Assembly (NCBI RefSeq): GCF_963853765.1
Contig: NC_088855.1
Span: 6,820,001 to 6,884,000, forward strand
DNA length: 64,000 bases
Origin: Magallana gigas
Lineage: Eukaryota
Direction: 5' to 3'
Shown here piece after piece: positions 5,593 through 25,303 of the stretch. Each line of letters starts with the position of its first letter. Positions within the stretch are counted from its first letter, which is position 1. The notes beneath the pieces are model-generated. The model had not been told where the DNA came from, searched no databases, and saw only the letters and a program-made list of their open reading frames with translations. The position numbers and the translations under genes are program-made.

Positions 5593-5810
5593 CAGGTGAA
5601 AACGCAGCTCAGGTAATCTTCTGGCAGGTAAAAGGGGCGGGGTTTTCCCACAGTCCCTTTGCTGGTGAGTCGCGTGCCAGAGAGTTCACCTGGCGCTGAG
5701 GTGACGCACAGATATTTATAACTCATAACACACGACAGAAAAATTCCGTTACACAAACCAATGATATTTCTGTGACTGTTTGGGGCAGGGTCAATATAAT
5801 GAATGACAAC
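5593..5810 (+). promoter_or_regulatory. Copy of the HES promoter module (E-box, GC-box/CSL site, class C site, CCAAT, TATA-like core) with no HES ORF behind it
   Basis: CAGGTGAAA 5593-5601; GGCGGGGTTTTCCCACA 5636-5652; 16-nt spacer; GTCGCGTGCCA 5669-5679; then AAATTCC..ACCAAT..GGCAGGGT..TATAATGAATGACA. Order and motifs match the reverse complement of 25090-25303. Confidence 0.7.
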
Positions 5811-7791
5811 TAAAATACCACGTGTACGACCATTTATAAAATTATACATATTGTCTTTCTAAAACATCCAGTTAAAATCCAAATTAGAAAAAAAGTAAAT
5901 TGTTATAATGAGTGCAAGGTTGTTTTTATTCACACGTCTAATAACGTTAACAAAGTTCGCTGATCAATCACCAGGACAAAAGTTTCCCTCAATGTAATTT
6001 AAGGCTCTGTGCAAAAACATCCGAGATTACTGCTTTATACTATTTACTATTTCGATTAAACGGTGTTGGGTAATTGATGTAACCTCTAAGATAAAGTTCG
6101 TACCTTCTTATGCTAACACTCATGTAAAGCTTATAAAGGCTGGCGTTAACGACTGCAATTAAAGACAACCAGAAGGGAGGCCTAGGTAAAGAAATCTTTT
6201 CATCTAAAGGTGTCAGAAACAGATAAGACAAATACTCCTCTCTCACGAAAAAAGGACATTTTTCCCGAAGTCTTTAAAAAAGCCCCCGGTGACCGACACT
6301 CATATGTAGAAGAGGGTCCTTTTGAAATCAGGCACTGTAAATGTTTCTTCGGAGACATCTCTAGCAAGTGCTAAATGAAAACTGAGACTCGCACAGTTTC
6401 GTTTTTTATAAAAAAGGAAATTAATTTGAAATAAATAATAGACCGTTGGTTTGACATGATAAGAGATGTCTCCTAGATAGGAATATTGTTTGCTTGAACC
6501 CTTCTCTTGTCTGAATTTCGCAGATAATTGTAAAATGCTACAAAAAAGTATAAAAACTCAAGACCTTCTTAAAATTTAGATACATTATTTATAAATTTTA
6601 ATTAACATTAAACAGAACTGTTCCAAAATTCACTTCAATATGATAGATGCATATTTAAGAAATTAGTTGAAAATGTTTTGAACTAATGGTTACATATAAC
6701 TAGAGAGGATAAGGCACCATATTGCAAGGTTGACCACAAAACACAAAAGTTCTTAAGAAAACGCGCGTTTTGTCTCGACAATGTCAAATCACATTTTACG
6801 GTGTTTGCACTGACATAATGTTATTCCAAAAACTAAAACATGTATGAAAAATAATATACAAAAACACGTGTGTTTGAAAGCAATTCAATAAAAGAAGCTT
6901 CTGCATAGAAATGTCACATTTATTCCTTTTTTCACCAATAAAGCAAGCACTAGCTTATGAATTTTTTGTCTCTTAAGAAACACAAATGTCAAGCATAACG
7001 AGCACAAAGAAAGTTTCTACTTTGTAATACTAGGGAGGATTGTATATAACTTCGAGATGTTATCTATATTTAAAGTATTGCCAATAATGAATACTTATCG
7101 TCTCAAAAATCAGATATGCCTTAACTCATTGTTGCTTAACTTGCTAATTTGAATAGAGAAATCGTATTTCTTACAATATCTGTTGGATAGGCAGTCTGCT
7201 TGCGTTCTCTTATCTGACCATCTTGGCACACGTGGTCCTCTCCTTCTGCAATGTCAAAAGCGCCAAACTTCAAGGATACATTTCCAATAAACTGAAAAAG
7301 GCTAAATTGTTCAATGTGAAATCTGATACTCGTAGATGAAATCTTTACATGTCATATGCAGTTCACTTGTCGTTTTTTATTACTTTGTTTAGTGAAAAAT
7401 TGAAACATACTTACAAGGCTAACAGAATGAAAAAAGATCTGATTTGAAATCTGACATTTCCTTCGCCCTTTGTCCCTTTCTTAATTGCATAGGCGCTCCC
7501 TCGTTCATTTTCCAATCTAGTTCTTACCAAAGCCTATTTAATAATTTTCAACTACACTTTACAATTTTGATCGAGTTGCTTATTTAATGTTGGCAATATG
7601 ACAACATAATTGATAAAAACTTGAATATATTGTTACGCTTATTGCAATATGAAAATTTATGATACTTTATATTTAAAAATGTTCATGGACGTAGAAAAAA
7701 TTTTGAAAAGAAAAAATGCACCAGACTTCAAAACTTTTTACAAATAATCCCTATTACATTGAAACTTTGAATATATTCATGTAACAATACG

Positions 7792-8160
7792 TATTATTAT
7801 ACTTTCATGTTAAATACTGAAATCTGATTGGTTTAGACACAGTTGATAATCCGTTCTATTACCCTCAGCGTAAGCAACACACTTAGCAACCGGTAACACA
7901 ATAAATTGTTACATGCGCGTAAATTATGCGCGTACGGTTCGCCGTGGAATTCACGTCATTTCTATATAAAAGTAGTAAAAACATCTATAAAATTAAGACA
8001 TTCAGTATAATAAAATAAATAAAGCCTGTTTGGGAGGATAACAGTTGAAATAGAGACCCCTCGAAAACCATTGTCAACCTCCGCTTCGCGTCGGTTGACA
8101 ATGGTTTTCTCGGGGTGTCAATTTCAACTGTTACCCTCCCAAACAGGCACTATTTATATA
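7792..8160 (-). mobile_element. Non-autonomous palindromic element, family A (long hairpin plus CCAAT tail; Crypton-like by architecture)
   Basis: Reverse-complement copy of the elements at 26843, 28162 and 28535; ~145-bp hairpin at 8020-8155 with apex GCTTCGC at 8083-8089; ATTGG at 7827-7831. Confidence 0.85.
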
Positions 8161-24289: not shown

Positions 24290-24943
24290 CTAAAATGACA
24301 AAAAATAAGATAATACATCTACATGTATACTTCTATTGGACGTAGGGAATGTGTTTAAAGTTAATAAAAGATTATTGAATAAGGTGCACATACACATACT
24401 TTTGTTTTTCTGCACTTTTCTCAAATGGCGGACCGTCATTTCAAGAATATCGGCTTTCTCTAGTTTATTCTGCCGTGTTCCCTGCAAGATAAATAAATAC
24501 GAACAATTTATTGCTTAATAAAGAAAATCTTTGAATAATAAAGCAAATGATACATTTCGAGATTTTTCTGTATGCTCATTAAGTCTTAAAGTCTTAATCT
24601 AACACATTACTAATCTATATAGTAATGAAAGTCAACTGACCGAAAGTGAAACATATTAACTTTAAATTAGTTAAATGGAACTCTAATCACGTGGTATGAA
24701 AGCTACTGATACCTCAGCCTTGATGACTTCGATGAGCAAGGACTTCAGTTCCGCCAAACTAGCGTTTATCCTGGCTCGTCTCTTCCTTTCCATGACAGGC
24801 TTTAAGCTCTGAAAAGTAGCAAAAGTAATGAAAAGTTCCTTATTATTATAATGTACAATACGCTGCGTTCATAAGAAGTAACACAACTGATAACTTACTT
24901 TACGATTCGGGGATGTGGTGGATGACACTTTTTCCGGACTCAT
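23418..24943 (-). CDS. hes: Hairy/Enhancer-of-split family bHLH-Orange repressor with C-terminal WRPW; join(24899..24943, 24713..24808, 24400..24481, 23418..24289), 364 aa
   Basis: Spliced translation MSPEKVSSTTSPNRK|SLKPVMERKRRARINASLAELKSLLIEVIKAE|GTRQNKLEKADILEMTVRHLRKVQKNKT|TDGKEVSRINKYRLGFSECASKVSQYL...DMWRPW*. It has the proline in the basic region, the Orange domain and WRPW. All three introns are GT-AG, in phases 0, 0, 1, matching the canonical HES1/hairy layout. Total 1095 nt in frame. The specific paralog cannot be assigned. Confidence 0.96.
24400..24481 (-). CDS. hes: HES exon 3 (loop and helix 2, KLEKADILEMTV)
   Basis: Acceptor TGCAG, donor GTATGT (phase 1). Confidence 0.95.
24713..24808 (-). 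CDS. hes: HES exon 2 (basic region and helix 1)
   Basis: Acceptor TTTTCAG, donor GTATCA; 96 nt encoding KPVMERKRRARIN. Too short to appear in the ORF track. Confidence 0.95.
24899..24943 (-). CDS. hes: HES exon 1, coding part (15 codons)
   Basis: ATG at 24943, ending in RK followed by donor GTAAGT, as is typical of HES first exons. Confidence 0.85.
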
Positions 24944-25089
24944 TTTCCTGGACTTTCCCTCGGCTATTTCACAGAACAGATCGTGTCGGACACGTGTCTT
25001 GACCGTGCTGGGCTTCCAACTTCTCCGAGTGGCGCTTGCCAGTTCTGTTCGCTCAGAAGGATCAACAATGAAATGACAACCTCAACTCC

Positions 25090-25303
25090 CCTGTCATTCA
25101 TATACGTAACCCTGCCTTTGGTAAATCAGAGGAGCAACGATTGGTCCGTGTGGAGGAATTTCAGGGCTACAGTGTACAGGTATTTATGAGTGACTGTCTC
25201 TTAAATGGCGGATGAACCGAGTGGCACGCGACCGACCTGATTCTAGACTGTGGGAAAACCCCGCCTCTTTAATACTTTTACCTGCGATGAAAGATTTCAC
25301 CTG
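25090..25303 (-). promoter_or_regulatory. HES proximal promoter: TATA-like core, CCAAT, class C HES site, CSL/Su(H) site fused to a GC box, CACCTG/TACCTG boxes
   Basis: TGGCACGCGAC 25222-25232; TGTGGGAAAACCCCGCC 25249-25265; TTTCACCTG 25295-25303; about 150-360 bp upstream of the ATG. CSL activation and HES autorepression are established features of HES promoters. Confidence 0.75.

Follow-up and report, generated by a model that had tools for sequence, protein, structure and literature searches.

What becomes of a promoter module when there is no gene behind it? The question is raised by a stretch of 64,000 nucleotides (nt) of the Magallana gigas genome (contig NC_088855.1, forward-strand positions 6,820,001 to 6,884,000, or G000:C3:6820001-6884000), hereafter the window, in which an earlier reading, made from the sequence alone, had described three copies of a HES promoter module and a HES gene behind only one of them. 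We refer to the two copies that lack a gene, at 5.6 and 18 kb, as orphan1 and orphan2. The data show that they are two old, promoter-derived, and selectively maintained non-coding elements, which carry the full set of Notch and HES inputs and have no transcription unit. The copies themselves, their rarity in the genome, the absence of exons behind two of them, and the constraint on them between species are direct observations.

Four copies of a HES promoter module

The module spans 44 nt and consists of an 11-mer (TGGCACGCGAC), 16 free bases, and a 17-mer (TGTGGGAAAACCCCGCC). A pattern match recovered it in the window three times with 0 mismatches (Table 1), and 0 of 100 dinucleotide-preserving shuffles contained a match, even when up to 3 mismatches were allowed. 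As the sequence-only reading had held, the spacer is 16 nt long in all three copies and the spacer sequences are unlike each other; about half of the spacer positions differ between paralog copies. The flanking motifs that it had placed at 4–5 and 29–34 nt were likewise located, with TGAAC preceding the 11-mer by 4, 5, and 4 nt and TTTCACCTG lying 34, 34, and 29 nt beyond the GC box.

A genome-wide search for the 17-mer revealed a fourth exact module with a 16-nt spacer at G000:C3:6812977-6813020(-), 7 kb to the left of the window. Specifically, the 17-mer has 5 occurrences in the 564-Mb genome (29 contigs), 4 of which lie within one cluster of two HES genes, HES-A and HES-B (three in the window and one at C3:6812977-6812993(-)), while the fifth is in an unrelated repeat on C1. 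The 11-mer alone is found at chance frequency genome-wide (46 occurrences vs 43 for the reversed control). Directly behind the fourth module lies HES-A, an intact HES gene with its Orange domain at C3:6814429-6814542(+), as located in a genome-wide Hairy_orange search, and with bHLH exons and a WRPW end in locus L012. The gene behind the 25-kb copy, HES-B, encodes bHLH and Orange domains and a WRPW end (Pfam Hairy_orange E = 8e-14), and its homologues include Ostrea edulis LOC125665326. Exons for bHLH, Orange, and WRPW are thus present within ~2 kb behind the 25-kb copy and the HES-A copy, and none are present behind the 5.6-kb and 18-kb copies. The earlier count of three copies and one gene therefore holds in that two copies of the window are gene-less, whereas the count itself comes from the edge of the window, beyond which lie one more copy and one more gene (four and two in all). 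A contig (P0003) considered as an mRNA that would fix the HES-B transcription start was rejected because it is genomic.

Table 1 Features of the window treated in the text, with positions counted from the first nucleotide of the window
Feature	Position	Strand	Remarks
orphan1 conserved block, HES-A-type upstream promoter copy	5490-5773	+	any gene would be to the right
orphan1 second Su(H)-type site CGTGAGAA	5543-5550	-	102 nt from the first; motif scan and alignment
orphan1 E-box block CAGGTGAAA (TTTCACCTG on the other strand)	5593-5601	+	
orphan1 44-nt module	5636-5679	-	exact match; predicted class C site, 16-nt spacer, predicted CSL/Su(H) site and GC box
orphan1 relic core promoter	5758-5812	+	CCAAT, GGCAGGGT, TATAATGAATGACAAC; homology to HES-A ends here
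orphan2 conserved block	18058-18263	-	distal HES-A-type part only: two Su(H) sites, class C site, GC box, E-box
orphan2 44-nt module	18073-18116	+	exact match
orphan2 second Su(H)-type site CGTGAGAA	18204-18211	+	104 nt from the first
Deeply conserved non-coding element	19164-19367	.	74% to O. edulis over 211 nt; Su(H) site 19220-19227 conserved; E-box
Deeply conserved non-coding element	19864-20030	.	86% to O. edulis over 170 nt; Su(H) site 19927-19934
HES-B gene	23418-24943	-	exons 24943-24899, 24808-24713, 24481-24400, 24289-23418; open reading frames and splice sites in the sequence
44-nt module in the working HES-B promoter	25222-25265	+	exact match; the related oyster's orthologous promoter has an exact module

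Both ends of the module read as binding sites. The 11-mer equals the published extended consensus of the Hairy class C site, ggCACGCG(A/C)C (PMC449821), and this predicted site (TGGCACGCGAC) is exact in the four genome copies and in O. edulis. A search for the YGTGRGAA core of CSL/Su(H) sites, with TGTGGGAA or CGTGGGAAAA as the best form, yielded the predicted site TGTGGGAAAA in every copy; TGTGGGAA corresponds to the RBPJ/CSL consensus, with an AAA extension that agrees with the TP1 element (PMC7685452). A second Su(H)-type site (CGTGAGAA) occurs in orphan1, orphan2, and HES-A, ~102-104 nt from the first and in direct orientation, and an E-box block (CAGGTGAAA or, on the other strand, TTTCACCTG) accompanies 4/4 module copies of the genome. 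In O. edulis, a HES gene in the fetched locus (L013) is preceded by the module at a distance of ~270 nt, the 17-mer having one mismatch and the spacer being 17 nt long. The place of the module in front of HES-A, HES-B, the O. edulis HES gene, and a related oyster's orthologue of HES-B supports its identity as a genuine HES promoter element.

The four modules lie within 32 kb in the order HES-A (rightward), orphan1 (rightward), orphan2 (leftward), and HES-B (leftward). HES-A and HES-B are convergent, tail to tail, and both orphans are inside the 28-kb gap that separates their 3' ends, each with its module oriented like that of the nearer gene. This direct orientation beside each gene fits tandem duplication, in which either whole HES paralogs may have been lost or only promoters copied; the data fit either course.

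To relate the orphans to the working promoters, we aligned six sequences, i.e. the promoters of HES-A, HES-B, the HES-B orthologue of the related oyster, and the O. edulis gene together with orphan1 and orphan2. Orphan1 and the HES-A promoter share 78% identity over 261 nt, and this alignment runs from ~330 nt upstream to TGAATGACAAC and then stops, so that there is no exon 1. The identity to HES-A is 85% in the distal block and 59% in the proximal block of orphan1, and 69% and 40%, respectively, in orphan2, whose proximal part is 35-40% identical to any copy, which is the random level; orphan2 and HES-B are 53% (distal) and 37% (proximal) identical. For comparison, HES-A and the O. edulis promoter are 60% identical distally and 73% proximally, and the proximal, core-promoter block of orphan1 is accordingly less HES-A-like than the O. 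edulis promoter is. Based on these block identities, both orphans are, as judged by alignment, HES-A-type in the distal block. The core promoter that the sequence-only reading had seen at the 5.6-kb copy is there, with CCAAT at 5758-5762, GGCAGGGT at 5784-5791, and TATAATGAATGACA at 5795-5808, while orphan2 has no core-promoter motifs. The positions at which the orphans differ from HES-A avoid the columns common to the three gene-linked promoters: the distal block of orphan2 matches HES-A at 85% of the shared vs 55% of the other columns (Fisher p = 6e-5), and orphan1 overall does so at 82% of the shared vs 65% of the other columns (p = 8e-4).

That no HES exons lie behind the two extra copies, as had been claimed, was borne out by tblastn searches in which the exons of HES-A and HES-B, used one by one, and the HES proteins of O. 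edulis and the related oyster gave nothing credible for bHLH, Orange, or WRPW at 5.8-18 kb, while the same queries matched HES-B strongly. A weak likeness to the exon 2/3 junction at 13792-13839 has no extension in any frame and was discarded as chance. None of the open reading frames (ORFs) of at least 65 amino acids (aa) between the orphans looks genuine, a 119-aa ORF across orphan1 was rejected as coding for lack of a Pfam match, and Rfam matched neither the orphans nor the conserved blocks that follow them immediately downstream (see below).

We also examined RNA at orphan1 and to its right. In a k-mer index, no run recorded as RNA holds 5750-11750, and the small shares that were found correspond to a miniature inverted-repeat transposable element (MITE). 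Read depth over 5400-11399 was then determined in two raw RNA runs (one polyA, one single-cell random-primed), each sampled at ~1%, and in two contig runs that are only guessed to be RNA, all without a HES positive control. The depth at 5400-7599, which includes orphan1 and the sequence just downstream, was zero in these four runs, of which the raw ones were sampled at only ~1% and none had a positive control; the only heavy coverage within 5400-11399 came from the multi-copy MITE at 7792-8164. This MITE-like repeat has internal inverted arms and also occurs at 26840-27229 and 28160-28910 (a 373-nt unit in two tandem copies); it is very abundant on both strands in the four runs, including the two raw RNA runs, and its reads enter many different flanks.

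Conservation of the orphans among oysters

For comparisons between species, we fetched the orthologous genomic contigs of two related oysters (SRR14865029, SRR27362822) by means of spurious ORFs overlapping or near the orphans. The first contig (L020) is 85% identical overall to window 2674-7553; over the orphan1 block, there are only 5 differences in 284 nt, whereas adjacent 100-nt bins are 57-82% identical, and the orphan1 module is exact, with 15/16 spacer positions retained. The second contig (L028) is 77% identical overall to window 16362-21355; over the orphan2 block, there are 2 differences in 206 nt, whereas most bins are ~75-85% identical, and the orphan2 module is exact with a spacer match of 16/16. 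The orphan blocks are the best-conserved stretches of their regions, match or exceed the coding exons of HES-B in conservation when these are compared in the same way, and have binomial probabilities < 1e-20 under the measured backgrounds. The spacers, described earlier as diverged, do differ between paralogs but are conserved between close species.

With 279/284 (orphan1) and 204/206 (orphan2) identical positions vs ~57-85% in neighbouring DNA and no coding signal, both orphans behave as conserved non-coding elements. Because both are 98-99% identical between species in such surroundings, strong purifying selection is the evident cause of their having remained nearly unchanged between oyster species. 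By comparison, the core-promoter part of orphan1 at 5775-5849 shows 76-84% identity to the related oyster, a level also seen in the neighbouring DNA. In five further haplotypes, which are ~96% identical to the window, the orphan2 module and its spacer are intact, and the 206-nt block has 3 variable sites vs ~6 expected, a trend that is not significant.

Conserved blocks also lie downstream of the orphans, at 6074-6573 and 6974-7473 for orphan1 and at 17762-17961 and 16962-17461 for orphan2. These blocks carry 1-2-nt indels between species, and an ORF tested in them specifies a protein that is 71% identical where the DNA is 91-97% identical; we therefore conclude that they are not coding. More generally, the blocks at 3074-3373, 3974-4573, 6074-6573, 6974-7473, 16962-17461, and 17762-17961 are 90-100% identical to the related oysters and have no ORF signal, and there is a perfect run of 171 nt at 6340-6510. 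Beside orphan2, ~500 nt (18349-18861) are missing from the contig of the related oyster, reflecting either an insertion here or a deletion there.

On a longer time scale, four colinear conserved elements 3' of the O. edulis HES gene match window 21457-21415, 20778-20603, 20030-19864, and 19367-19164 with 74-86% identity, all in the stretch between HES-B and orphan2, which is the next element in line. The element at 19164-19367 is 89-99% identical to the related oyster, and that at 19864-20030 contains CACGTG, CACCTG, and an N-box-like GGCACGAG and has a 145-nt perfect run against the related oyster. With their conserved, predicted high-affinity Su(H) sites and E-boxes, these two of the four elements are candidate ancient Notch enhancers. 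Since they are shared with O. edulis, this interval contains gene-less Su(H)-bearing conserved elements that predate the split of the two oyster genera. An element in intron 2 of HES-A (L012 3871-3984, G000:C3:6813871-6813984) is 82% identical to an intron of the O. edulis HES gene, although this gene is nearer to HES-B in its coding sequence and downstream elements; this mosaic hints that regulatory elements were partitioned after duplication.

Possible functions of the orphans

Our working hypothesis, which we consider probable, is that the orphans derive from promoters, respond to Notch and HES, and serve HES-A and/or HES-B as distal or shadow enhancers. The factors that would bind, the enhancer activity, and the target genes are suggested by the motifs. 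Specifically, one oyster HES subfamily would have the module as the core of its promoter-proximal Notch-response region, in which a putative high-affinity CSL/Su(H) site is joined to a GC box and, 16 nt from the CSL site, an extended class C site of the kind bound by Hairy/HES repressors is predicted; a CACCTG E-box stands near the module, and HES-A-type copies have the second Su(H)-type site ~100 nt away. The HES-A and HES-B copies are the working promoters and the two inner copies old duplicates of a HES-A-type promoter without a transcription unit, of which orphan1 keeps decaying core-promoter motifs and orphan2 the distal block only. As Notch-activated, HES-repressed distal enhancers, the orphans would be shadow copies of the promoter's own input logic, and they may act jointly with further conserved elements of the same interval that bear Su(H) sites. 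At the level of motifs and position, they have what a shadow enhancer needs, i.e. the same inputs as the promoters at a distance of 5-10 kb, 3' of HES-B and HES-A, and their 98-99% vs ~57-85% identity agrees with retention as regulatory elements or, as had been suggested earlier, shadow enhancers. As Notch-responsive regulatory modules, they belong to an ordinary kind of element and do not form a new class.

Several points weigh against this hypothesis. Constraint shows that an element has a function and not which one, and a promoter would give the same picture if its RNA were unstable or stage-specific. Orphan1 retains CCAAT and TATA-like motifs, and there are conserved blocks just downstream of both orphans. 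The negative RNA result is weak, given the ~1% sampling, the contig runs of guessed RNA nature, the unspecified tissue and stage, and the lack of a HES control. Finally, the fetched O. edulis locus ends before the expected position of orphan2 and so covers no orphan.

The alternative that survives best, and that we regard as possible without expecting it, is that the orphans are active Notch-responsive promoters of an unannotated long non-coding RNA (lncRNA), enhancer RNA, or small-ORF RNA, with convergent transcription from ~5.83 kb (+) and ~18.03 kb (-). The CCAAT, GGCAGGGT, and TATAAT-GAATGACA motifs of orphan1 are in register with those of the working promoters, and the conserved blocks downstream of both orphans lie in promoter orientation, as such transcripts would have it. 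Yet the four runs have zero depth at 5400-7599 and coverage of the MITE only, the core part of orphan1 is just 59% identical to HES-A and is no better conserved at 5775-5849 than the surrounding DNA, orphan2 lacks any core-promoter motif, and the downstream blocks are not coding, with no genuine-looking ORF of at least 65 aa. For the lncRNAs or small ORFs proposed in the sequence-only reading, no evidence emerged from the four weakly sampled runs, with zero reads at 5400-7599, or from the downstream blocks, with their 1-2-nt indels. In a related and rather improbable version, the gene-less modules would be working Notch-activated, HES-repressed promoters firing convergent unstable transcripts, or sinks for HES and CSL, that couple or buffer the dynamics of the two autorepressing genes HES-A and HES-B, between which they lie; if true, this would be a regulatory device made from duplicated promoters rather than a conventional enhancer.

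We consider it unlikely that the orphans are mainly repressive or insulating elements between the convergent genes, serving as landing pads for HES/Groucho or as HES/CSL sinks. Each of them has a perfect extended class C site beside the CSL site and both lie between two convergent HES genes, as this view would predict, but at HES-A and HES-B this set of motifs serves an activating promoter region.

It is less likely still that they are functionless relics of lost HES paralogs or of promoter-only duplications that owe their identity to young age or to gene conversion with HES-A. A short conversion tract could mimic the difference between the distal (85%) and proximal (59%) identity of orphan1 to HES-A, and the absence of reads at 5400-7599 in the four runs is what a relic would give. 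Conversion would, however, homogenise the spacers, about half of whose positions differ between paralogs; the distal block of orphan2 reaches 85% identity to HES-A at the shared columns, compared with 69% overall; and the between-species identity of 98-99% vs ~57-85% in neighbouring DNA is incompatible with the measured backgrounds (binomial < 1e-20). That the module is part of a transposon, as the MITE-like repeats nearby (7792-8164, 26840-27229, 28160-28910) might suggest, or that the copies form an ordinary tandem cluster in which each is followed by a HES gene, can be dismissed, because the 17-mer occurs only five times in the genome, the flanks of the orphans (5815-7790 and 15800-18060) are single copy, and no HES exons lie behind the inner copies; both had been named in advance as findings that would overturn the sequence-only reading. 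We conclude that neutral relics and transposons are effectively excluded.

Spacing, related systems, and neighbouring features

Within the HES subfamily considered here, the spacer is 16 nt in four paralogs and two relatives and 17 nt in O. edulis. Two other HES genes, in loci L008 and L009 (G000:C3:7357222 and 7372834), have TGTGGGAAAACTCCGCC preceded by CACGTGCC, both at 31 nt; measured to TGTGGGAA, the distance from CACGTG in these paralogs at C3:7.36-7.37 Mb is 31 nt vs 18 nt from the hexamer in the present cluster. The rigid grammar claimed in the sequence-only reading is thus overstated: to judge from these copies, the spacing seems constrained but tolerates +1, and it appears to be specific to the subfamily rather than universal.

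A Su(H) paired site (SPS) consists of two CSL sites in head-to-head arrangement, 15-17 bp apart (PMC7685452), and the 16-nt distance from the CSL site in the oyster module resembles the length of the SPS spacer. The module differs from an SPS in that its CSL site is single and monomeric. We rejected an SPS as its identity: the partner at 16 nt lies 5' and is a class C site, and no copy has a CSL-like site (TTCNCACR) 16 nt 3' of TGTGGGAA. With the Notch-response promoters of vertebrate Hes1 and Drosophila E(spl), which combine CSL/Su(H) sites with N-box or class C sites for HES autoregulation, the oyster module has in common a predicted high-affinity CSL site near a HES-binding site upstream of a HES gene, an arrangement that implies Notch activation together with negative autoregulation. 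Unlike in those promoters, there is no paired CSL site, the class C partner is on the side opposite to that of the paired-site partner, and 2/4 copies have no gene.

The Drosophila bHLH-Orange gene Hey has a redundant pair of Su(H)-dependent enhancers (PMC11353301). Here too, several separate modules with the same Su(H) input surround bHLH-Orange genes; in contrast to Hey, the extra oyster modules can be recognised by sequence as copies of the promoter-proximal region, are situated 3' of the genes, and have an activity that is presumed from motifs. Clustered, tandemly duplicated HES genes are known from molluscs (PMC5381572), and the present cluster resembles these in its grouping of paralogs; with the HES paralogs at C3:7.36-7.37 Mb, it has in common that paralogs share promoter motifs at base-exact distances, and it differs from them in the 18-nt distance, in having a class C rather than a class B core, and in its gene-less modules.

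Other features of the region are recorded here in their own right. A 519-nt repeat with internal inverted structure, probably a fragment of a transposon, occurs, with 83% identity between copies, at 12819-13325 of the window, midway between the orphans, and at L012 938-1452, 2 kb upstream of HES-A. About 0.9 kb past the HES-B stop codon lies a near-perfect hairpin (22357-22543; 70-nt arms, 96% complementary), within which 22373-22527 has the only Rfam matches of note, namely sub-threshold, miRNA-like ones to MIR2593 (59.6 bits, cut-off 96.2) and mir-279 (38.7, cut-off 56). It may be either the hairpin of a MITE or a miRNA-like locus that belongs to the HES-B 3' untranslated region or lies close to it. 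A 158-nt tandem array of four to five copies (58077-58850 and 22634-22853) is related to sequence just 3' of HES-B. A single-exon gene on the minus strand (35329-36450) encodes a rhodopsin-family G-protein-coupled receptor of 373 aa (Pfam 7tm_1, E = 7e-28).

The core read-out of Notch signalling is provided by HES genes, and the evolution of their cis-regulation after duplication is poorly known outside flies and vertebrates. At the locus described here, the block through which a promoter would receive its Notch and HES inputs was copied, the gene was lost or was never part of the copy, and the block has been kept nearly base for base between oysters. The four natural variants, with the same motifs, different spacers, and with or without a core promoter, form a compact set for working out the rules of activator-repressor spacing in a mollusc. 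If the gene-less copies prove to be enhancers, they would provide a clear example, at the level of sequence, of shadow enhancers born by promoter duplication.

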